Source: Phaeosaccion multiseriatum (taxonomy: Eukaryota; Protista; Ochrophyta, other classes). Taken from it: 64,000 bases of DNA. Shown in pieces: positions 4,005 through 61,519 of the stretch (position 1 is the stretch's first letter; every line of letters begins with the position of its first letter). The notes beneath the pieces were generated by a model. It did not search any database. It was not told the DNA's origin and worked only from the letters and a program-made list of their open reading frames with translations. Both the position numbers and the translations under genes were made by a program. The stretch is from NCBI GenBank assembly GCA_965112735.1, contig OZ218955.1, positions 186,001 through 250,000 on the forward strand. The letters are read 5' to 3'.

Positions 4005-7000
4005 ATGTGTGGAAACTTCGGGTAAGTGCTGCTGCGTCCTGCTGCTCGCGGCCGCTGTCGGTGCCAAGTCCAGCGGAAGAAAGCCCGGGGCGGGCAGGAG
4101 CCACGAAAGCATGGAACATGGGAAGGAGACGCTCTAACCACCCTCTATAGAATATGCCTGGGCTTGCCCTTGTGGGGGATCTCTCCTGAAGGAAGCAACG
4201 GGTGGAGATCTGACTCCCTCCCCCCCTCCCTCCCTCCCTCCCTCCCTCCCTCCCCCCCTCCCTCCCTCCCTCCCTCCCTCCCTCCCTCCCTCCCCTCTCC
4301 TCCTCCCCCCTGCCCAGGATGCTGCGGCTGCTGCTGGCCGACCCCCGTCTCGCGGAGAGGCTGCAGCAGCGAGACGATGGGATGACCATGGTGTCCAGCA
4401 CTGACTTGGAGATCCTCACGCGAATGGCCGCTTGCACAGAGATCAGGTCAGACATCACACACCTACCTCATCATCCACATCTGTGTCATCCGTCTGGCAC
4501 CACCTTTCGTGGATCTCTCCTTCCCCCTACTTCTTCTCGCTCTCGCTCTATCCACCCATCTACCACATCCCCATCCCCCTTTTCCCTCCTCTTCACGCCT
4601 CGTCACACCCGCCACCCTCCACCCCCCCCCCTCTCCCCCTCTCTGCCTAAAACAGGGGCGGGCAAGCAGCAGGAGTAAGTGTGATGGAATGGCAAGAACA
4701 AGACCCCCGTCAGATGATGCTGCCGCCCTCCAGCAACAAAGCCTCCGGAGCACGGGGAGGGGAAGGAGAGGGCAATGGCACCGTGACCTCCCCAAAGATC
4801 GCAGCCTCAGACGAAGAGGAGGGGGGCGGCGGACCGGTGTGGGGAGGGGGAAATCTTTCCCAGCCTGGGCCCAAACATCCGCTAGGCTTCGCAGGCATGG
4901 CCTCATCAAAGCCCGACCTGCAACCGTTCCACATGCGCGTGAGGCTGCTGGCGAGGAAGCGACACCCTCTTGCTGACGACTTTGCCGCCCTCTGGAGCTC
5001 CACGTTCCGTTCCAAGCACCCGGGCAGAGCAAAGCTCAAGAAGGCAAACCATCAGAGCTACAGCGCCGCTTACATTGGCCACACACGCTTCGCCACGGGG
5101 TAAGGCACGGGGAGCATAGGTCTCTCTCTCTCGCCCTCTCTCTCCCTCTCTCTCCCTCTCCCTCCCTCTCCCTCTCCCTCTCCCTCGCCCTCTCTCCCTC
5201 TCTCTCTCCATCTCTCTCCCCCTCTCTCTCCCTCTCTCTCTCTCTCTGTGGGTGGAGGGAGTGGACGTGGGGGGTGCGTTTGTGCGTGTGAGAGATGCAT
5301 CACCTCGACGTACTCACAGAGGATACTTCTTGTCGATATTCCTTTGCCCATCTGCAGTGCCTCGTCCCTCCCTCGGATCCTCACCCTTACCCTTAGCCTT
5401 ACGCTGACCCTCATCCCGCCCCTCTCTCACATCTCTCTCTCTCTCTCAGGTCCCTGAACAGAGTGCCTGAACGTAAGTACCATTGTGTGTATTGATGAGG
5501 AATGTCTTTATTGATGAGGAGTGTCTTTATTGATGAGGAATGTCTTTGTTGATGAGGAATGTCTTTGTTGATGAGGAAGGGTCAGGGAGGTGGTGCACTG
5601 TTGTTATTGTGCTTGCTTGGTGCTGTTCTCTTGCCCTGGAGCTAGAGGGGGAGAGAAGGAGGGAGGGAGGAAGGGAGGGAAATGGAGTATCCTCGTCATA
5701 GAGCTTCAGGCTTCATTCAGAGCCCCAGCAGAGAGAGGACTGCACGGGAGGGGAAGGGGGGGTGGTCTGTCTTCGCCTCCCCTTCCCTCTCCCCTTCCCT
5801 CTCCCCTTCCCTCTCCCCTCTCCTCTCCCCTTCCCTCCCCTCTCCCCTCTCCCCCCTCTCCTCTGCTCCCGCCTCTCCCCCCCTCTCCCCTCACACGGCA
5901 AGGTAACCCTACTTCTATCGCCCCCCCCCTCCCCAAAAAAAACTCACCAATCCCTTCCCTCCTTCTCCCCCTCCTCCCTCCCCCCTCCCAGTCCATCCGC
6001 ACGAGTGGACCCCGCTGCGGCAAGAGAACGTGTGGCGTCTCTATGAAGGCTCGTTCCGCCTGCTGCACAACTGCCGAGTGGGCATCAACATCACCCACAA
6101 CGGTGACTTTGAGGCCTTCGACATGTTCAGCGCCATGGCGTCCAACACAGAGCTCGGGCTGTGGCTGGAGAGGGTGTTACACCAACCCAATGCACTCAAA
6201 GGTAAGACAAGACAAGTGAGAATTTATCCATTGGAATTTATGGACTTTGGGGAATTTATCAACCTAAGAATTACGTAATTGTTAGGAGGTGTGGGACTGC
6301 ATTGGCCAAAGCGCTCAACGGGGGATATGGGGGTATATGGGTACGGGGGCGTGGGTGTGGGTGTGGGTGTGGGTGTGGGTCTGGCTGGGTGTGCGTATAC
6401 ATATAAATATTTTTTTAGATATGTTTTCTTCACTCTCTATTTATATACTATATATGTATTATATAGAAGTATGTGTATTGGATGTGGGTGTGGTGTGAAA
6501 GTACGTATGCCTTTGTGCCTGATTCCTTCCGCGGCCCCCCTTCCCTCCCCTATCCACCCCATATATCCCTGTACACACGGCCATGTGGCCACCCACCTGC
6601 CCGCAGGTGACAGCCCCAAGATCGCGGGTCTGATGGATCTCCTCTGCACGCAGGGGCGCTGGGCAGCATCCGCCCGTCTTGCCTATCAACGAGCTATCGC
6701 AACGGGAAAGGAGGACGCTTTCGGAAAAGAGGTGAGTGAGTGAGTGAGTGAGTGAGTGAGTGAGTGAGTGAGTGAGCGGGCCCAGCCTTACGCAATGGTC
6801 ACGAACCGTACTTGGGCCCAGTCGTAACGAAACACACCACACGCCGTTAACGCTCCCCAACGACCGTTAGGGGGTAAGTGCCGAGGCGGGCAACTACGCC
6901 CCCAGCCCCTCCTGGTGCAAGCAGTGGGGAGACCTCATGGAGGGAGTGTGGGAGGGACATAGCAACAAGATCATCAAGGTTGTATTCAAAGACACCAGCG

Positions 7001-8382
7001 GGACGGACTCTTCAGCAGCAGCTTCGGCGAGCGCCGGCGGGAGACGTTACACTATCGTGCAGAGTGCCGTCGGCGCACTGATCGATGATATAGCGGCCAT
7101 GCTGGATCAGAAGGGGGTGGAGTTTACCTGCTACCCCATGCCCAACCGACAGCAGCTGCAGCATCTTGGGACAGGGGCACCGGAGTGGAGCAAGACGGAT
7201 ACATACTCATTTGCTCACCATGCCGTGAGGGCCTTCTTAAGGCAGGACCTGTACACTGCTCTTACTGAGGTGAGGGAGGGAGGGAGGGAGGGAAACTGGA
7301 ATGGACACTGAAACTGCACACTTCAAACTACAAACTGAAACTGTATCTTGTTTCCAGGTGATGCTGCGGGCGGAGGGAAGCTTCGGCATCACATGCATGA
7401 ATACTTTGGAGCAGGACTGTGTGTGCCTCGCCAGCAAGGGGCAGCCCATGGCGCTCTCACTCAGCCCGGAGGAACCCGTTGTGCTCTTTGGGTCGGAGGC
7501 AGCAGCGGTGGGAACGGGGGTGAGGAGGTGAGTAGGGAGGGTGGGGTGGAGGAGAGGAGGTGGGGAGGGGAGGGGAGGGGAGGGATGGAGTGGAAGGGAC
7601 TCACTCTCTCGCGCACGCACGCGCGCACACACACACACACACACTCTCTCTCTCTCTCCCTGTGACTGGTCCTCCTACCTCCATTTCTCTCTAGGTGGGT
7701 GGATAAGCGCCCTGGCGCACAAGCCAGCTCGGAGGTACCCCTCACCACTCAGTCGCACAGAATCGACATGGACGAGAGAGGGGAGGTGATGCGTGTGGGG
7801 CGGGCAGACCCCCTGATGAACCTCCACAGCTTTCTTAACCCCATCCGAGACGAAGAGGCCAAGGCGACGGAGCGGCGGCGAGCTGAGGCCGCCGGTGAGG
7901 AGACTCTTGATGAGAGTATGGCCATGGCGAGGAAGTACAGCGGTGGCACTCTCACTGCGAGCAGCAGCAATCCGGGCTATACTGTTCGTGGTGGCGTCAA
8001 TGGCAGCAACAGCAGCAACAAGAGAACCACAACTATGCTTGCGTCTGGGAGGCAGCAGTCGGCTGCTCCAAAGGCGGGCAGCAGCAGTAGCGGCCCTGGG
8101 GGGGCTGGTGGCGGTGCCAGTAACGGCACTGATGCCCCCCCCGAGGAAGAAGCCATGGGGTGGAACATGGTGTCAGGACTGCAGATCCGCTCCTACTCGC
8201 TTGTGCACTTGCACGAGGCGAGCCAGGGGGACCTGCAAGCCAGGCTCTGCGCCATTGATCCGCAGAAGGAGGTGGGTGGATGGCAGTGGATGGTTGGGGG
8301 TTGGACGGGAGACTCACGCAGACAACCAAACTCACACTCACACTCTCACACATACACATCCATGCACAGACAAAACAAACAT

Positions 8383-8426
<44 letters not shown>

Positions 8427-11400
8427 TCACTCCCACTCACTCCCACTCACTCCCACAGGCCCAGCGAGAGCTTGCAGACGCCTTGGAAGTCTCCAAGCAA
8501 GGCCTCCAGAACGTGCCCGACCTCAGTATGGGCCACTCCCGGCCCAGCCTCAGCGAGATATCAAGGAGGGGCTCGTCCAGCATGCTGGCTTGGTCAGCCC
8601 TCAATGCGAGAGGGAGAGGCCTTCCCACCTCACGGCCAGAGAGACACATGGGGGGGCGGAGTGGTCAGAATAAGGGGACGAGTTGGTGGGGAAGACGGGC
8701 AGTAGTCGAGGGGAAAGGTAGAGGGCAGGAGGGGAAGGAGGAGAGGAGGAAGGAGAAGGAAGACCTTGTGGAGTGGGACTTGCGAAGTGTGTCGTACAAC
8801 GTGTCCACCATCGACGAGAACTGGAGGGACGAGCTGGGAGAGCCGGGGGGGCCATCGGCCTCTGCACCCACGGGGCCGGGCGGCGCGTTGCCGCTGGGGA
8901 GCGCTTTTCAAAAGCCCATCCTCAAGACGGCGGAGGCCTTTTGTCAGCGCCTCTACAAGGCCATGCAGGTAGGTAGAGCGAGTAGGAGGAGGGGGCAAGC
9001 ACATGGGGTATCGGGGGAGGCGGGCGGGGCTGTATGCTCAGTTCCTCTTCACCCGCCCCCACTCACCCCCTACACCCATCCACTGCCATCCACTGCCATC
9101 CCCCATTCACCCCTTTCAGGCTCGGCAAGAGAAGAACACGAACACGATCGACGTGCTTGTGTCGGGCATAGAGGTGTCCCTTTGGATGGCGGAGCAATGG
9201 GCCGCAGACATGAGGCAGATGTTCCCTTTGCTGCGAGTGGAGAGCCTCAGCGCCAACAAGCTCCTGGGTATTGGAGGGCACAGCAATGAGAAGGTAGGGG
9301 AGGGTGCGGGGATGGCAGTGGATGGATGGATGGATGGATGGATGGGTGGGGGGATGGCAGTGGATGGATGAGGGGCTTGGGGATGGCAGGGCAGTGGGTA
9401 GTTCTTATGTTCCGTTGTTGCTCACCCACCCACTGTCCATCCGCTGCCATCCGCTGCTTGGTGTCAGGTGTTCACGTCGGGCTCTCACTTGCTGGAGCTG
9501 TCTGACCTGTCTGAAAACGTCGTGGTGCTGATGGTGTCACAGTCGGGCCAAACCTTCCCCGTGCTGCACGCCACACGGTGAGGGGGGGGTGGATGGCAGC
9601 TGATGGAAGGGAGGAAGGGAGGGAGGGAGGGAGGGTGGACAAGGAGCTTCATTCGCTGCCTTCCTTTCTTTGGTGCTCGCTCAACGTCCCCCTCTCTCTC
9701 TCCTTCCCTCTCTCTCTCCCTCCATCCCTCCCTCCCTCCCTCCCTCCCTCCCTCCCTCCCTCCCTCCCTCCCTCCCTCTCTCCCTCCCTCCCTCCCTCCC
9801 TCCCTCCCTCCCTCCCTCCCTCCCTCCCTCCCTCCCTCCCTCCCTCCCTCCCTCCCTCCCTCCCTCCCTCCCTCCCTCCCTCCCTCCCTCCATCCCTCCA
9901 TCCCTCCATCCCTCCCTCCCTCCCTCAGCATGATGGCTAAGCACGTCCCCCTCGCCGTGTTCCTGATGACCGGAGAGCCCAACAGCAAGATGGAGCAGGC
10001 CCTGCGCCAAGTGCAGGCCACCAACACCACCATGACGGAGAAGGAGCGGCTCGCCCCACGGGTCTTCCTCAACTTCAGGTAAGGAGGGGGGGGGGGATTT
10101 GCTGACTTAGGGGGGGGTTTATTGATTTCTGCTTTCCCTTGTAGGAGTTAACCTAAGAATTACGTATGTATGGGAGGCGTGCAGCTCATCTTCCCTCTCT
10201 TAAATCTCTCTCTCCCTCTCTGCTACGGCTCCTTCCCTTCCCATCCACCGCCACCCCTATATATGTATTATATATACCCCCCCTCCCAGCGGCCACTGCC
10301 CTGCTGAGCCCACGTCCATGGCGGCCATCGCAACTCACCACACGCTGTCAAAGCTGCTTGTCTTCGCCGCGCAGTACACGTGCACGAGGTGGTTGTACGA
10401 CAACAAAGTCGTCGCCAGCAACAAGCGTGCCGACGCGCTTGTCCTATCCTCCGGCACGCCCCCCAAGGTAAGGCAGGAGTCTTACGTATGGTTAGATCAA
10501 GACATATAAGGATGGATAAGGAGTCATACATATGGACAGATGAGGATGATCCTTAGATGGGGGTTGATGAGGATAGGTCGTTAGGTAAGGATAGATATGA
10601 GTAGATAAGGATGGATAAGGACTGAGAAGAACTGACACGATCCTTAGGTAGGGATAGATACGATTAGATAGGAAGAATTGAGACGGACTGAATGGAAGGC
10701 CCAGGCGGTCCGGTGTTGCTCTTGTCTTACTCTGGTCCAGACAAGTAAGCAGGAGTAGGCGTTGGTCGTACATATCCATAAGGGACGCCTCTCATCTCCC
10801 TCCCTCCCTTTCTCGTCTAAAGGGCCCGACGACGAAGAAGGGCAAAGGCAGCAACACGACCATGAGCGACGACACCGGCAGCAGCGATACCAGCACTAGC
10901 ACCAGCACGAGCACCAGCGCGAGCACTACCAGCAGCGCCAGCCGCAACAGGAGCAACGAGGTGGTGGGCTTTATGCGGGGCATGTGCCTAAATGATGCGC
11001 GGGACATGCACATCATGCTCGACGAGGCGGTGCTCAAGGGCGTCACCAACATCACCGGTACGTACGTAATGTTACGTCTCTGTTGTAAGACTCATCACCT
11101 ACGGGCCTTACGTAAGGGTACTCACGAAGGGCGGGGAGGCAGAATGGTTGCACACATTGGATGGCCTCGTTTCGTATGGTGTCTGTTCCTCTCTCTTTTG
11201 TGTCTCTTGCGACCCTCTCCTAGCGCTCTTTTGTTGCCTTGCTGCCCGCTCATGTCTCTCGACTGTTTCTCTCGCCTCTGTCCCTCTCTTGCTGCCCTTG
11301 AATGAACATGACCCCATGAACATGAACAGGGGCCGACGAGCAGGGCAATCGAATCAAGTCGAGTACGAGGGACAGGCTGCTTGACCAAGGTGAGTCTCTT

Positions 11401-26818: not shown

Positions 26819-27073
26819 TTACTTCTTGGGTGTCTTGGCCTTGGGGGGGGGCAGCGACTCATACGCAAGTTGCAGTTGGGAGAGAGTGTCATCCGCCACC
26901 AGCGCTCGGTGTTGCTCCTCCTGCAAGGCGGCGTCCGTCGCGTCTACGCTCTCTTCCCCCCCTGCGCCCTCCCCGCTCGGCCTGTGCTCCTTTAAGAAGG
27001 CCCGCAGCCTCTTGGCAGCCACTTCGACCCCCACGCTCTTTCGCTCTGCAACAGTCACGCCAGGTGGGAGCAT
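26819..27073 (-). CDS. Small 84-aa protein, possibly RNA polymerase I subunit A14-like
   Basis: Intact ORF with ATG after an A-run. EVAAKRLRAFLKEH...DTLSQLQLAYESLPP resembles the two-helix Rpa14/Ker1 pattern ending SQLKRIQRDxxGLPP. Confidence 0.45.
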   Translation of the reverse strand: MLPPGVTVAERKSVGVEVAAKRLRAFLKEHRPSGEGAGGEESVDATDAALQEEQHRALVADDTLSQLQLAYESLPPPKAKTPKK

Positions 27074-27454
27074 TTTTTTTTTTTAAGACCGCCACACAAA
27101 GCAGACATCTGTGAGTCGTTGGCGGATAGCCATCAGCCAGCCATCCAAAGCTGAAACTGAAACTGGTTGGCGCGTTCCTGCACGATTGCATTTTGTATTT
27201 TAATAAAAAAAAACAAGGGAGGAGCTCACCAGGGAGCTCCATAGAGTCCTTTCCTCCGAGAGGCTTGACGATGTCAGCTCAAGCAGTAGCTAGCGGAAGC
27301 AGCGGCGGCAGCAGCCTCAATTGTTGAGAGGTTTCTTTTTCTCTTCCTTTCCATTTCAGATTGACAAAGCTATAGGAGCGGTATCGGTCTACTCCTTACA
27401 GACTCGTGTGCTTCGTCTTCGTTTCTCCTTCGGCGCGTGCTATTTATTAGAGTG

Positions 27455-30401
27455 ATGGCGGACGTACGCGAGGCTTCGCAGCGTGCGGTGCTCTCCGCCC
27501 TCTTCCTCGCCACAGGCGGCCGGAACTCCTGGCACCGCAAGAGCGGATGGAATACCGAAGCACCTTTACGTCTCTGGCATGGAGTGAGCGTGGAGAATGG
27601 CTGTGTGGTGAAGCTCGACCTGGGTAGTAATGAGCTCTTAGGTAAGACGGAATGCAGGGGATCCACCTGCTGGAGCTGTAGTGTGAGGAGGAGCGGGGGG
27701 GCTGCTGGGTGAAGCAAAGTATCTATGAATGTCTGGAAAAAGCCATTGCGGTTCTCCGAAACATGACCACTGGACTGGCAGAGGCTTCACATGATACAAG
27801 GCAATGGAGGGATCGGAGGAATGTGTTGTGTCGATGATGGCTTGGGAAGCCTGCGAAGATGGTCGCTATATGTCTTTTAGCAGCAGTCCTGTTGGCCTGG
27901 GGATGGGGTGGTGCAGGCGGGAGCTGGCGTAGCTTTTGGTGATGGCAACGATCATGAAGTGGAGTGGCACGCAAGGAGTAAAAGAGCTGTCCCCTCTCAT
28001 CCACAGGGACCATCCCGCCGGAGCTTGGTCAACTCTCCACCCTTACTGTCCTGGGCCTCGAGAACAACAGGCTCTCTGGTAAGAAGTGGATAATAGCGGC
28101 CACTAGTTTGCTCAGTGTAACCAACAAAGCCCTTTGCTCTACTCTACAGGGAGCATTCCACCGGAGATTGGCCAGCTCACCAATCTGACACGCCTGGAGC
28201 TCTACAGCAACCAGCTCTCTGGTAAGCAAGTCGCGGTAGCGATCCCCGCGCACCCCCTTTCCTTGATATTGATGTGACCAAAGGACCTTCCCCTCTCCCG
28301 CAGGGACCATTCCACCGGAGCTTGGTCAGCTCTCCAGTCTGATACGCCTGGATCTCCGCTTCAACCAACTGTCTGGTAAGCGGAAGCAACTCTCTCTCGC
28401 GCCCTCTTCACGTCAAAATCGCGTGACGAAAGAACTTTCCTCTCATTCGCAGGAACGATTCCGCCGGAGCTTGGCCAACTGTCCAATCTGAGGACCCTGT
28501 ATCTCCGTGGCTACCAGCTCTCTGGTACGCAAGTGATAGCAACGCTCTGCGCCAGCCTGGCTTGGTCCCTGACACACATCTAGTCACTCAGACAGACCAC
28601 TCCCCTTGGTCCTTTTATTGCCACCCACCATCGGGCATGCTCTGATTTGCTGACTTACTTGAGGACTGCTCTGCCTCCTCTCCCACACCACACGTGCACA
28701 CGTTGTTCAGAGGAGCCATCAATAGAGGAGTTGCGTGCGAGGTGGCAGCAAGCGCTCATCGTCACGGAGGTAAGGATCCAAGGGCGAGGGAGCGATCGAA
28801 GCGCAGGCAAGCCATGCCATCATGTGCATGTTTGGTGTTCGTTGGAGGGACAGGAGGTGCATATGACGTACGTGGGAGTAAGTCAATGGCTTGGCGAGAG
28901 GCATCTGCTTCACTTCACTCATTGAGCGAAAGGGCAGACCTGAGCATCAACCGGTCCCTCCTTCGCCGCCCCTCCTGCCCCGCCCCTTCATCTTCTCTGA
29001 AAGAGGACTGCACAGGCTGATGGGGGTGGTGCTCGGCGTGCCCCGTACGAAGGCGCCAGAGACTTTGGAGTCGGAGCTTTGGGGTCCATGCTGCAGGAGA
29101 GAGATGGCGAGGTGGCAGCGCTGAGAGCAAGACTGCTGGAGAGCGACACCAAAGTCGCCGAGCTAGAGGAGCAGCTTCGCCTTACTGTAGAGCAACTACC
29201 CAACCACACCACGCAGCAAGACGGGAAGGACTTCCGCCTCTTCTCCACTTCACAGATGGCGGAGGCGTGCCGTGACTTTGCGGATGCCGGCGTGCTGCTG
29301 GGCAGGGGGGGCTTCGGGGCAGTGTATCGAGGAAATGGCGCCGCCTTAGGGCTGGGGAGCGCGCAGGAGGTGGCTGTGAAGATGCTCGACGCGGACAGTC
29401 TGGAGACTGTAGTGACCAACTTCCGGAAGGAGGTGAGGGTGCTAACGATGTGTCAGCACGAGAACCTCGTGCCGCTACTGGGCGTCTGCTTGGACCCGAG
29501 CAGCTTGGTGTACCCACTCATGAGGGGAGGCAGCTTGGACGCGTATCTGCCCGTCCGCGCAACGCTGCAGGGAGGCTCGGAGCGAGTGCCGCTGTCTGCT
29601 CCGAGACGGTTGGGAATAGTGGTCGGCGTTGCCAGAGCTCTGATGTACCTGCACAGCGAGATGGGCGAGAAGCCCGTAATCATCCACCGAGATGTGAAGC
29701 CTCACAACATCCTCTTGGAGGAGGTGAGTGAAGGGGATGGTGGAGGCATCTCTGCCTCGCTGGGAGTGCGTCTGGGGGACGTGGGAATAGCTCAGGTGTC
29801 GTCCGGTATGACGGCAACGACAGGAACAACGATAGGAACGGGCCTTGCAGGAACGTTCTTGTACATGGACCGGGACTACATAGATGGTGGTGATCCAAAG
29901 TGTGAGCACGATGTGTACTCCCTGGGTGTGGTGATGCTGGAGCTTGTCATGGGCAAACTTGTGCTTGCTCAACATCTGCAGCACGGTGCGAGGCAGCGGC
30001 TGATATCCGACGACGAAGCCACAGGGGTGAAAGGGATGGCGGATTCAGTCATCTCTTGGACTGGAGAGGCCCCTCCACTGCTTCAGGCGCTCGCAATTAT
30101 GGCGTATCGCTGTACACAGCAAGACCCCGAGGCCAGGCCCTCTCTCAATGAGATTGTTCAGACCCTGGCCGCCGCGTTGGGGAGAGAGCGGAGACGGTCG
30201 GCCGAGCGAGTGGAGCCTGTGCGCGACCGGCGGTGTATCATATGCATGGATGCAGCCCCCCACACACGATTCTTGCCCTGCCTCCATTCCTGCACCTGCC
30301 ACACTTGTGGGACGAGGCTACAGAGCGAGGGGCGACGCTGTCCGCTTTGCAATACGAACATCCACTGTGTGGAGGAAGGGCACTTCGACTCCACGTTTTA
30401 A
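27455..30401 (+). CDS. LRR - coiled coil - IRAK/Pelle-type kinase - RING-HC protein (exons 27455..27641, 28007..28078, 28150..28221, 28304..28375, 28453..28524, 28711..28769, ~29004..30401)
   Basis: LRR N-cap ALFLATGG..W..KSGW..WHGVSV..VVKLDL and four GxIPPELGQL repeats. Kinase motifs LGRGGFGAVYRG, VAVK, HENLVPLLG, HRDVKPHNILL and DVYSLGVV. RING CIIC..PCLH..CHTC..CPLC. All splice junctions are GT-AG and in frame. Confidence 0.9.
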
Positions 30402-31351
30402 GGCTTGGCTGCTTGGCTGGGGTAGGGGAGTATGGGTGCTGAGCCAAAGATGATGGGAGGGAAAGAGCAAGGGGGGGTGCAACGCTGCTGGTGGGCGTCC
30501 CTCGTGCTTCTCACAGCACTGTGCAGACGTCTTACGTGACATCATCATATAAGAGTACGAACCATCCTTGGCCTCACCCCCCCCTCTCCAATTGGCACCC
30601 AAATTGGCTGATAAGCAATACGTATCCAGCAGTCACATTGGCTGGTAAGCAATGAGTACCCAGCTCTCACCGGCGAATTGAAATGGGCAGGCGCGTCGAT
30701 GTCAGCCTCCCAGAGCATCATCGTGTTTGTGTATGTGTGTGTGTGTGTGCGTGAAGGAGGAGAGTTTTGAGTTTAAATTTGGATTTCTAGGGGCCTGAAA
30801 GTGAAACGCCGAAACGCCAGGTGGGGGGACAACCAAAAACCAACTTTAAGAAGAAGAAGGGGCGAGAGGGATAACGGATGCATCAGTAGCACCACAATAG
30901 CAGCAGTAGCAGTAGCCAGTCGCAGCAGCAGTGGCAGCAGGGAGAAGGAGCAACACCACAGCACCACGCGAAAGGACCTCCAACTACCAAACAAGAAAGG
31001 CCGGGCAAAGTTCTTCTCTAGGCTAAAGAGTTACTAGTGTATCATATAACCTGGAGGGAGTGAGGGCCGAGGAAGCGCAGAGCACTAGCAGTAGCGGGAT
31101 GCAAGGACGGAAAGTGCCAGCCTGAACACGTGACAGGAGCGGCAGCAGCAGCAGCAGACTGGCACATACAGTCAGCATGGAGACTGAGCGAAGGGAGAGA
31201 GGGCGAGAGCTTGCGACCTCACGCACCACAGCTCGGACGGGGAGAGAGGGCGGGGCGGGTGGAGCCCACGCCATCCACCATAAGCAAGCCCTCAAGCCCA
31301 AGTTCTTTTCCAAAAATCACTTCAGCTCTCCCTTTCAAGACGAGGACGACG

Positions 31352-59140: not shown

Positions 59141-61519
59141 GTGGTGGTGGTGGTGGTGGTTGGGGGGGGGCAGGACCCCGAAGCAGCACCGGTGCTACTA
59201 CGGAGAGTGACTGCTATCGGGTGAATGTTCTCTGCTTGCTGCTGGCGCATGGAGCGAGGCTCGACATGTTCGACCGAGAGGGTCTGCAGCCCCTGCACAG
59301 AGCAGCACGAGCAGGCCAGGTGAGCGGTGGGGGGTGAGGGATGAGCTGCGCGGACAGAAAGGGTTGAAAGGGTAGAGAGAGAACAGAGAGTAGAAAGCTC
59401 ATGGGAGGATACAGAGGGATGGCTGCTCGCCCCCACCTTTCCTCGCCCTACCCTGACTCTGACTGTGACCCTGACCCTGACCCTGACCTTGACCCTGATC
59501 CTGACCCTGACCCTGACCCTGACCCTGACCCTGACCCTGACCCCGACCCTGACCCTGACCCCGACCCTGACCCTGATCATGAATCTGCGACTGCCCCTTC
59601 TCCTACTTCATGTGTCGCACGTGCTCGCTCCATCCTCCTCCCAATCCTCATATCGCTCCCTCCTCCTCCCCTCCCCCCTATGGCTTGCTCCTTCCCTAAA
59701 GGTCCGGGCCGCTCTCTGTCTGCTGTCCGGCGGCGCTGACTTGTACGCTCGCACTCGGAGGGGACAGACAGGTGCGAGGGACGTACCTGGTGTCAGTCAG
59801 TCAGCTAGTACGTGGTGTCAGTCAGTCAGCTAGTACCTGGTGTCAGTCAGTCAGCTAGTACCTGGTGTTGGTCAGTCAGCTAGTACCTGGTGTCAGTCAA
59901 TCAGCTAGTACCTGGTGTCAGTCAATCAGCTCGTACCTGGTGTCAGTAAATCAGCTAGTATCTGGTGTCAGTCAGTCAGCTAGTACCTGGTGTCAGTCAA
60001 TCAGCTAGTACCTGGTGTCAGTCAGTCAGCTAGCACCTGGCGTCAGCCGGCCAGTAGCAGTACCTGGTGTCAGCAAGTCAGTAGCAGTACCTGGTGCCCG
60101 TCAATCAGTAGCAGTACCTGGTGTCAGTCAATCAGTAGCAGTACCTGGTGTCAGCCAGTCAATAGCAGTACTTGGTGTCAGGCTAGGGGGGGGGGGGTAG
60201 CTGGGGCACATGGGGCCTCTCTCATGCAACGGCAAGGGCTTATGTCCGGCTATGCCCGAAGTCCGAACGTGTGCTCACTCGTCCCCCAATCCTCCTCTTC
60301 CTCCCCCTCCTCCTCCTCCTAGATTCGGCCTCGATTCGAAACTAAACCTATCCACTCCACCCCCCCCCCCCCCCCCCAACATCTATCCGCTGCCATCGCT
60401 CCCCCCTTACTTCCAGCCCTGCACCTAGCCGCACTTAAGCGCCGTAAGGCTGTGTGCCGCCTTCTCGCGTATTGGGACAGCGAGCGCTGCGTACTCAGGG
60501 GCCTCCGGGACTGTCTAGGGATCACGGCAGAGGAGGGGATGGGCAGCTCGGCCGGCTTGGGGGGCGAGGATACCCAACAAGACCAGGACGGGGAGGAGGA
60601 CCTCGGTGTGGACGAGGGAGCGGGCATTTTGGCGTGCTTGCACACCCCGTGGGAAGCGGCCTTCCGCGGAGATGTTGATGGCCTCAGGAGGTGTCTGTTT
60701 GACGGGGTCGGCGCAGGGGAGGGGGGCGGGGGGGGGAGGGGGGGGAGGCGAGTCATCTATCCGACGGCGGCGGCACTGCGGAGCCTGCCTTGGGCACCTC
60801 CGGGGCTCGGCAGCCGCACACCTGTGCACGGGCTGACTCCGCTCCATTGCGCTCTCGTCGGACTGGCGGCGGCCGCCAAGGGCATCAACCTGCTAAGTAA
60901 ATCAGGGAGGAGGGGAGGGGGAGGGGGAGGAGGAAGAGGAGGAAGAGGAGGGGAGAGCAATTTAGGCGTTGTGGAGGCGCTGGCCAAGCGTGGCCGGCGC
61001 CCTTCCCACTGTAGCGTGTCCAGCAACGCCGCCGTGTTCCGTCCCTACCGAGCCACCGTGAGGCTCCTTCTGACCCAGGAGAGGGACTCTGTGGCCGGGG
61101 TGGACAAGTGCTGTCGCACCCCGCTACACCTCGCGGCCGCGGCGGGAGTGCTCGACGTTGTCACTGACCTGCTGCAGGGAGGGGCGAATGTGACTAGCGT
61201 GGACACTGAGGGCAACACGCCGTTACACTATGCCTTTGCCTTTGCCAACGCAGCTGTGGCTCAGGCGTTGGAGAAGGCCGCTCGGGCACAGGAGCAGGGG
61301 GGCAGCAGCAGCAGCAGCAGTAGTAGTGGCAGTAGTACCAGTAGGAGTGGTAGCAGGAGCCGGAGCGGTGAGGAGGGTGGTGAGAAGGGTGGGGGTGGGT
61401 CCGATGTTGTGAACAAGGAGGGGCGCACACCGAGGGAGGTGATGGGTTTCGGTGTCAATGTCATGCCCTTGCTCGCCGCCCAACGCACTACAGTCGCGGA
61501 AGCAGCGGTGGACGAGTGA
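55337..61519 (+). CDS. Ankyrin-repeat protein with an EF-hand-like segment, multi-exon
   Basis: Ankyrin motifs RTALHYA, GHTALHWAA, GRPALLFAA, GWTALHH, GLQPLHRAA, RTPLHLAA and GNTPLHYA. EF-hand-like FEEFDRRGRSTVSLSDFREAL. Confidence 0.85.
59452..59578. repeat. (CCCTGA)n intronic hexamer repeat
   Basis: Directly visible. The same unit forms a coding (GS)n tract at ~41270-41355. Confidence 0.9.
59783..60180. repeat. Intronic minisatellite: 25-bp GTACCTGGTGTCAGTCAGTCAGCTA units grading into a ~27-bp variant
   Basis: About 15 tandem units are directly visible. Confidence 0.9.

Follow-up and report, generated by a model that had tools for sequence, protein, structure and literature searches.

A candidate leucine-rich repeat-kinase-RING protein in the alga Phaeosaccion multiseriatum and its relationship to a protist kinase-RING family

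Fusions of a protein kinase to a ubiquitin ligase (E3) are only now coming under study, in plants (PUB33), and the known fusions of leucine-rich repeats (LRRs) to an E3 (LRSAM1) are animal pattern-recognition ligases. Here we describe a predicted gene at positions 27455-30401 of a 64,000-nucleotide stretch of the Phaeosaccion multiseriatum genome (contig OZ218955.1, positions 186,001 to 250,000; hereafter the window), which is eukaryotic, GC-rich (59%) and has short introns. The predicted product would carry LRRs, a kinase and a RING in one chain, and we consider it probable that this is a single seven-exon gene encoding a soluble 643-amino-acid (aa), LRR-headed member of an uncharacterised protist family with a coiled coil-kinase-RING (CC-kinase-RING) core; its kinase would tune the RING ligase. 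To our knowledge no function has been described for any member of that family, and we know of no innate-immune receptors in the lineage of this alga.

The closest described systems are of several kinds. The plant PUB-VI/RLCK-IXb proteins (Arabidopsis PUB32/33/50 and tomato SlRLCK-IXb-1) also combine a cytoplasmic kinase of the receptor-like kinase (RLK)/Pelle type with a C-terminal E3. PUB33 has both kinase and E3 activities and forms homomers, and one autophosphorylation site inversely controls the two activities (10.64898/2026.02.10.704836), while SlRLCK-IXb-1 is an active E3 with no kinase activity detectable in vitro (PMC12803775); pathogen effectors connect the family with immunity (10.64898/2026.02.10.704836; PMC12803775). 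LRSAM1 recognises its target, bacteria, through the LRR, self-associates through coiled coils that also regulate ligase activity, and builds a ubiquitin coat with its RING (PMC8567218; PMC11863841). In the LRR-ROCO GTPases of the brown alga Ectocarpus each LRR lies on one 72-nt exon encoding 24 residues of the form GxxPxxLxxxxxLxxLxLxxNxLx (PMC3341825, Zambounis et al. 2012). Five Ectocarpus LRR-kinases use these type I LRR exons as well, and the proteins of this kind, the LRR-ROCO GTPases included, were proposed as candidate cytoplasmic pathogen receptors; neither exon shuffling nor clustering was found for the LRR-kinases, and the words 'RING' and 'ubiquitin' are absent from the main text of that report (PMC3341825).

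Exon chain and domains of the predicted protein

Seven pieces on the + strand, with AG/GT borders, join in frame across 27455-30401 to give 1932 nt (643 codons plus stop), separated by introns of 365, 71, 82, 77, 186 and 234 nt that are all GT-AG. The initial annotation of the window had described an LRR cap and four LRRs linked after splicing through a short helix and a coiled coil to an IRAK/Pelle-like kinase and a RING-HC, and the in-frame 643-aa model, Pfam and fold matches agree with this description. In order, the protein would comprise a cap-like segment, five LRRs (one in exon 1 and four on cassette exons), a short linker helix, a likely coiled coil of ~46 residues, the kinase, an IAP/MGRN1-like RING and a conserved aromatic tail.

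Exon 1 (27455..27641, +) begins with an ATG that is the first in its frame, encodes a Trp-rich, cap-like N-terminal segment (W..GW....L..WHGV) and a partial first LRR (VVKLDLGSNELLG), and ends in phase 1 at a GT donor. Domain, family and fold searches were run exon by exon, and exon 1 scanned alone against Pfam gave no match. It is followed by four 72-nt LRR exons, each on the + strand and in phase 1-1: 28007..28078 (TIPPELGQLSTLTVLGLENNRLS), 28150..28221 (SIPPEIGQLTNLTRLELYSNQLS; LRR_4, E 0.0075), 28304..28375 (TIPPELGQLSSLIRLDLRFNQLS) and 28453..28524 (TIPPELGQLSNLRTLYLRGYQLS; LRR_4, E 0.017), the last being terminal and degenerate (N to Y). The linker exon (28711..28769, +; 59 nt, phase 1 to 0) encodes E-EPSIEELRARWQQALIVTE, and its frame has no ATG. 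The last exon (29004..30401, +) encodes a disordered linker, a long helix, the kinase, the RING, the conserved tail and the stop, and an in-frame TGA lies immediately 5′ of its acceptor, at 28998-29000. Four public sequencing runs from one sample, none of them recorded as RNA, cover 27300-30600 as genomic contigs in which the introns are kept and joints are absent. The contigs are identical in sequence to the assembly, which they confirm, and are uninformative on splicing.

The four 72-nt exons each match 9-10 of the 10 consensus positions of xIPxxLGxLxxLxxLxLxxNxLS, with one repeat of the form xIPPELGQLxxLxxLxLxxNxLS per exon, and nowhere else in the window does an AG|72 nt|GT unit match 7 or more of the 10. 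When single 23-aa LRR exons are scanned against Pfam, LRR_4 is the only match and scores below threshold (16.9 and 15.8 bits against a cut-off of 27), because single LRR exons are too short. The exon design (24-residue repeats GxIPxxLxxLxxLxxLxLxxNxLx, one per 72-nt phase-1 exon, in four exons) fits that of the type I LRR exon, so that the earlier assignment of these repeats to the LRR type of brown-algal LRR-ROCO proteins holds by the published definition (PMC3341825).

The long helix occupies residues 19-64 of the last exon (29058..29195, +; 46 residues) and is a candidate coiled coil. It is one unbroken helix in the AlphaFold model of this exon, which also has a well-formed kinase (mean predicted local distance difference test score, pLDDT, 74.8; predicted template-modelling score, pTM, 0.65), and the homologous region in relatives has weak matches to coiled-coil families.

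The kinase domain (29232..30188, +) is assigned to the RLK/Pelle/IRAK type by profile, structure and motif matches. In Pfam the last exon matches PK_Tyr_Ser-Thr (PF07714) at 8e-32 and Pkinase (PF00069) at 7e-31, and the nearest solved kinases by sequence are BAK1, CERK1, SYMRK, FERONIA and IRAK4 (E 5e-30 to 1e-22), a set that the AlphaFold model also matches by fold (Foldseek target TM-score 0.78-0.86). The motifs reported in the initial annotation were all located in the last exon, on the + strand. The full catalytic set is present and of the RD type, with the Gly-rich loop (GRGGFG, 29301-29318), the beta-3 Lys (VAVK, 29370-29381), the alpha-C Glu (FRKEVRVL, 29421-29444), the HRD Asp and catalytic Asn (HRDVKPHN, 29685-29708) and the metal-binding Asp (DVG, 29778-29786), and the activation segment is long and Ser/Thr-rich. 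The canonical DFG Phe and the APE motif are not kept, DVG and YMDRDY (29862-29879) standing in their places; the DFG Phe is a regulatory-spine residue. Numbered along the 643-aa model, the VAVK lysine is residue 304 and the DVG aspartate residue 437.

The RING-HC (C3HC4; 30234..30350, +) has the arrangement C-x2-C-x11-C-x-H-x3-C-x2-C-x10-C-x2-C with all eight of eight zinc ligands, and matches Pfam zf-C3HC4_3 (PF13920) at E 2.6e-10 (40.4 bits against a cut-off of 27). Ile follows C1 and Pro follows C7, residues that in such RINGs usually serve contact with the ubiquitin-conjugating enzyme (E2). The domain is modelled at pLDDT 87-95 (AlphaFold), and the nearest solved RINGs include the equine herpesvirus-1 RING domain, MGRN1, cIAP1/2, XIAP and MUL1. 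The C-terminal tail VEEGHFDSTF (30369..30398, +) corresponds in the family alignment to the motif E-x-G-x-F-x-x-T-[FYL]. IAP-type RINGs dimerise through their C-terminal tail; a homodimer prediction for the RING with its tail (two copies of 30189-30398) scored 0.03, which is no evidence either way.

Two features lie upstream of the gene. A candidate divergent first-exon open reading frame is present on the minus strand at 26819-27073, and would leave ~380 bp upstream of the ATG of the gene. At 27358-27410, 45-95 bp upstream of the start codon, there is a dispersed element of ~50 bp with at least 21 other copies in the genome (84-98% identity), at which the public contigs break and the depth is 3-6 times that of the flanks. 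Either the end of a transposon or a motif shared by promoters or 5′-untranslated regions could account for it.

Paralogues and relatives in other protists

A search of the genome (67 Mb in 22 contigs) recovered, besides the window gene, copies on contig C7 (78% identical) and contig C2 (59%), plus fragments; two intact LRR-headed copies exist in total. The C7 paralogue (L014, G000:C7:223000-232500; 78% identity by tblastn, 76% in global alignment) has the same exon chain, with exon 1 at 4194-4392, five 72-nt LRR exons, a linker exon at 5735-5793 (59 nt) and a last exon at 6013-7707, and DNA similarity to the window gene extends from 3 nt before the exon-1 ATG to the stop codon. The C7 last exon has an in-frame TGA directly 5′ of its acceptor and no in-frame ATG until 'DADSMQT', downstream of the VAVK lysine; the frame of the linker exon likewise lacks an ATG, and the 219-nt interval between the linker and the last exon yielded no exon of matching phase that begins with one. 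Therefore only exon 1 can supply the AUG in C7.

The linker exon has kept equal length and phase in the two copies through compensating 3-nt changes, its GTAAGG donor and pyrimidine tract are conserved, and the acceptor region of the last exon is conserved where the introns are not. The ratio of nonsynonymous to synonymous substitution rates (dN/dS) between window and C7 copies is 0.30 for the kinase, 0.15 for the RING, 0.24 for the helix/coiled coil and 0.26 for the linker exon (18 codons), and both copies have therefore been maintained by purifying selection. Exon 1 is 69% identical between the two, with a dN/dS of ~1.05 (62 codons). The helix region of C7 (L014 6013-6550) is expanded to ~150 residues, with heptad-like internal repeats of LQERD(G/D)EVE...RDAELEA, against ~46 in the window copy.

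The LRR array of C7 (L014 4629-5372) consists of 5.0 tandem copies of a 150-bp unit, exon plus intron, at 93% identity, and two of its exons encode the same protein sequence. Differences between the units fall almost entirely on codons 13, 14, 16, 18 and 19, the x positions of LxxLxLxxN that form the concave face, and the same codons are the most variable in the older array of the window gene. The window and C7 copies have 76-78% of their kinase residues in common and none of the five concave-face LRR residues. This pattern of variation fits a binding surface undergoing change and says nothing of the identity of a ligand.

A decayed third copy on contig C6 (L016, G000:C6:462000-470000) retains an exon-1 remnant (4618-4679, 84% identity) ~260 bp upstream of a kinase remnant (4938-5416, 80% identity, with a stop); the order of these parts is kept, and the LRR exons, helix and RING are missing through an internal deletion. 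One copy of the ~50-bp dispersed element lies 5′ of it, at C6:463747-463802. The C2 paralogue (L015, G000:C2:1403000-1412999, 6872-9018) is a CC-kinase-RING gene without LRR exons. Its RING has a 4-residue insert. Upstream lies an open frame, different from that of the kinase exon, whose end consists of a weakly DnaJ_C-like stretch (E 0.1) and, after it, a long coiled coil. A further multi-exon kinase-RING gene (L017, G000:C3:5394000-5403000, ~5090-7810) is closer than the window gene to the ankyrin-headed form of Chrysoparadoxa (up to 53% identity, in the N-lobe) and may be an ortholog of that form. In the window itself, positions 61103-61231 give a short ankyrin-repeat match, 48-50% identical across ~40 residues, to the N-terminal end of ankyrin-kinase-RING proteins from Ectocarpus and Chrysoparadoxa. 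More distant kinase matches in the genome (L008-L013) were set aside as members of other families with a normal DFG.

Beyond this genome, the only full-length matches that include the RING, in a word search and in an exhaustive search of representatives, have the same core behind other heads. These comprise ankyrin-CC-kinase-RING proteins of Ectocarpus fasciculatus (CAM9098093.1, P0270) and Chrysoparadoxa australica (P0002), a WD40-UBA-kinase-RING protein of unknown origin assembled by Logan, a WD40-kinase-RING protein of the amoebozoan Stenamoeba, and forms with UBA, with a coiled coil only or with no recognisable head. The ESM Atlas contains a 97-member, mainly haptophyte cluster of kinase plus C3HC4_3 proteins; of the feature-based look-alikes in this resource, plant kinase-U-box proteins come first. 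Across 18 aligned members the catalytic residues vary little or not at all, and the position of DFG is occupied by DVG, DAG or DHG, one outlier excepted. The APE region has the form GY[LIM]DP.Y, from which YMDRDY of the window gene is derived, and a conserved E.G.F..T[FYL] tail comes after the RING. Since D[V/A/H]G is common to the whole clade, DVG is a clade signature under selection and not a lesion, and on the same alignment the altered APE region is likewise a clade feature and not a defect private to the window gene. The brown-algal, Ectocarpus-type ankyrin forms P0001 and P0270 have Asp and not Cys as their sixth RING ligand (…CFHSIACQEDA…), whereas the window protein keeps all eight.

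A maximum-likelihood tree (with three plant RLKs as outgroup and no PUB-VI sequence included) places the three paralogues of this genome in one clade (100/100), sister to the ankyrin forms (98/96), and sets all of the kinase-RING proteins apart from the plant RLKs (97/97). As judged from these sequences, the LRR head seems to have taken the place of some other repeat head in this lineage. Outside this genome, LRR, kinase and C3HC4_3 RING were combined in none of the 120 best word-search matches and in none of the RING-bearing proteins that the exhaustive search placed among its 150 best representatives, and, as these are top matches only, this is limited evidence that the form is absent elsewhere. 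We found no paper on the combination of LRRs with this kinase and a C3HC4_3 RING. The initial annotation did not recognise the architecture as a characterised family, which is upheld for the LRR-headed form, for which no matching paper or database protein was found, but needs amending for the core, which is widespread and has studied analogues in PUB33/RLCK-IXb and LRSAM1.

A probable single soluble chain and its alternatives

Whether the LRR and kinase exons belong to one gene was judged by comparison, because the sequencing runs at the locus are genomic. The comparison with C7 strongly favours a single gene at 27455-30401, as the initial annotation had assumed. The alternative is a pair of adjacent genes, the first LRR-only (exon 1, the four LRR exons and the linker reading to a TGA at 28923-28925) and the second a CC-kinase-RING gene starting at an ATG at 29088. 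Such a division is consistent with the position of this in-frame ATG upstream of the helix, with the C2 paralogue having just this composition, with an exon 1 that is not clearly under purifying selection, and with genomic runs that contain no joints. However, it would leave the C7 kinase-RING with no AUG even though its kinase and RING are under purifying selection, and it must contend with the conservation of the linker exon, its donor and the last-exon acceptor between introns that are not conserved, with phases that all chain back to exon 1, and with the decayed third copy in which exon-1 and kinase remnants have stayed together. Two separate genes are accordingly improbable in our estimation. 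It is far less probable again, to the point of being very hard to credit, that the gene encodes a membrane receptor kinase of the plant or brown-algal LRR-receptor-kinase type from which a signal-peptide or transmembrane exon has been missed, notwithstanding the resemblance of its kinase family and LRR type to those of LRR-RLKs. Kyte-Doolittle hydropathy in 19-residue windows reaches a maximum of 0.65 across exon 1, the LRR exons and the linker (0.65 in exon 1, -0.51 in the linker), and the sole window above 1.6 is the buried alpha-F helix of the kinase. The earlier finding of no transmembrane helix between LRR and kinase is therefore reproduced. A hydrophobic open segment was sought by hydropathy in introns 5 and 6, the interval 28525-29003 having been singled out beforehand as the place where a transmembrane exon might lie, and none was found, so that such an exon was rejected. 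Intron 1 does contain an ATG-led hydrophobic 19-mer (27859-27915, MVAICLLAAVLLAWGWGGA, hydropathy 2.03) that could in principle splice in phase 1 and would suit a membrane receptor, but it is not conserved in the C7 paralogue and as an exon would be topologically senseless, placing kinase and RING on the LRR side; it was rejected as probably due to chance. The introns are in any case unconserved between the paralogues except at splice-site flanks, and the heads of the relatives (ankyrin, WD40, UBA) are cytosolic modules.

Granted one soluble chain, the main mechanistic rival, unlikely in our view and yet to be taken seriously, is that the kinase fold serves for regulation or docking only and that the protein is an LRR-targeted RING ligase like LRSAM1, with a pseudokinase as scaffold. 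The DFG Phe and the Pro-Glu of APE are replaced (DVG and YMDRDY), and the tomato RLCK-IXb relative SlRLCK-IXb-1 works as an E3 although no kinase activity could be detected in vitro (PMC12803775); therefore kinase activity is not assured, and the activation segment and an insert at 244-251 are modelled at low confidence by AlphaFold. A scaffold role is harder to reconcile with catalytic residues that are near-invariant across the clade from stramenopiles to an amoebozoan, with D[V/A/H]G as a clade trait and not a recent lesion, with the kinase dN/dS of 0.30, and with PUB33, which is active in both roles (10.64898/2026.02.10.704836). The doubt over kinase activity is one of several points that weigh against a soluble, LRR-headed chain in which a kinase tunes a RING ligase. 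The exon junctions are predictions from the genomic sequence, and the single LRR exons fall short of Pfam thresholds; the dN/dS of exon 1 fits relaxed or diversifying evolution; the C2 paralogue has no LRR exons; and a separate CC-kinase-RING product from the ATG at 29088 of the window copy, ahead of the helix, is possible. Finally, the LRR-headed form has just two intact, unclustered copies, unlike typical expanded families of immune receptors.

Proposed function and comparison with known systems

For the single soluble chain that we favour, the following mechanism can be proposed. The LRR face would capture a protein ligand and the long helix would hold the chain as an oligomer; trans-autophosphorylation on the Ser/Thr-rich activation segment would then tune the RING ligase, by analogy with PUB33, and the RING would ubiquitinate the bound ligand or a partner. 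The ligand may be either a pathogen molecule, which would make the protein an immune sensor as for LRSAM1, or an endogenous substrate. An immune role is possible but unsupported, and is a guess. A broader and rather doubtful proposal is that the CC-kinase-RING core is a portable 'phosphorylate-and-ubiquitinate' module placed behind exchangeable heads, and that the LRR copies diversify their concave face by exon-cassette duplication and act as single-chain intracellular immune receptors that ubiquitinate a pathogen protein with the kinase as switch. If this were true, sensor, transducer and effector would be combined in one polypeptide, independent of the nucleotide-binding LRR (NLR), Toll-like receptor (TLR) and RLK systems. 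A protein with LRRs, kinase and RING would in itself allow a direct test of the coupling between ligand binding, phosphorylation and ubiquitination. The wider result may prove the more useful, namely an unnamed, broadly distributed protist family of kinase-RING proteins in which a non-DFG motif is conserved and the heads are exchangeable, which is one to name and which offers natural domain-swap variants for experiments.

Of the systems with which the window protein can be compared, the ankyrin-headed family members of Ectocarpus and Chrysoparadoxa share with it the coiled coil, an RLK/Pelle-like kinase with D[V/A/H]G and Y[LIM]D..Y, the C3HC4_3 RING and the E.G.F..T[FY] tail. The protist family members differ from it in the head, which is ankyrin, or WD40 or UBA in more distant members, and not LRR, and their identity to it is 34-38%. 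The plant PUB-VI/RLCK-IXb proteins have a U-box E3 and no LRR head, whereas the window protein has a zinc RING and no U-box match in Pfam. LRSAM1, like the window protein, is cytosolic or soluble and has an N-terminal LRR, a coiled coil and a C-terminal RING, but it carries a SAM domain between coiled coils and RING where the window protein has the kinase and no SAM match in Pfam; the likeness is one of architecture and RING type. ROCO proteins signal through Roc-COR, and the exons of the window gene have no Pfam match to Roc or COR. The plant LRR-RLKs (BAK1, SYMRK, FLS2) belong to the same kinase superfamily, provide the best sequence and fold matches and have the same plant-type LRR consensus. 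In these receptors the LRRs are extracellular, a signal peptide and a transmembrane helix are present and a RING is absent; none of their membrane features is seen in the window gene by hydropathy. Kinase-E3 and LRR-E3 fusions are thus already known, and it is the three-part LRR-kinase-RING chain and the protist kinase-RING family that are both undescribed.

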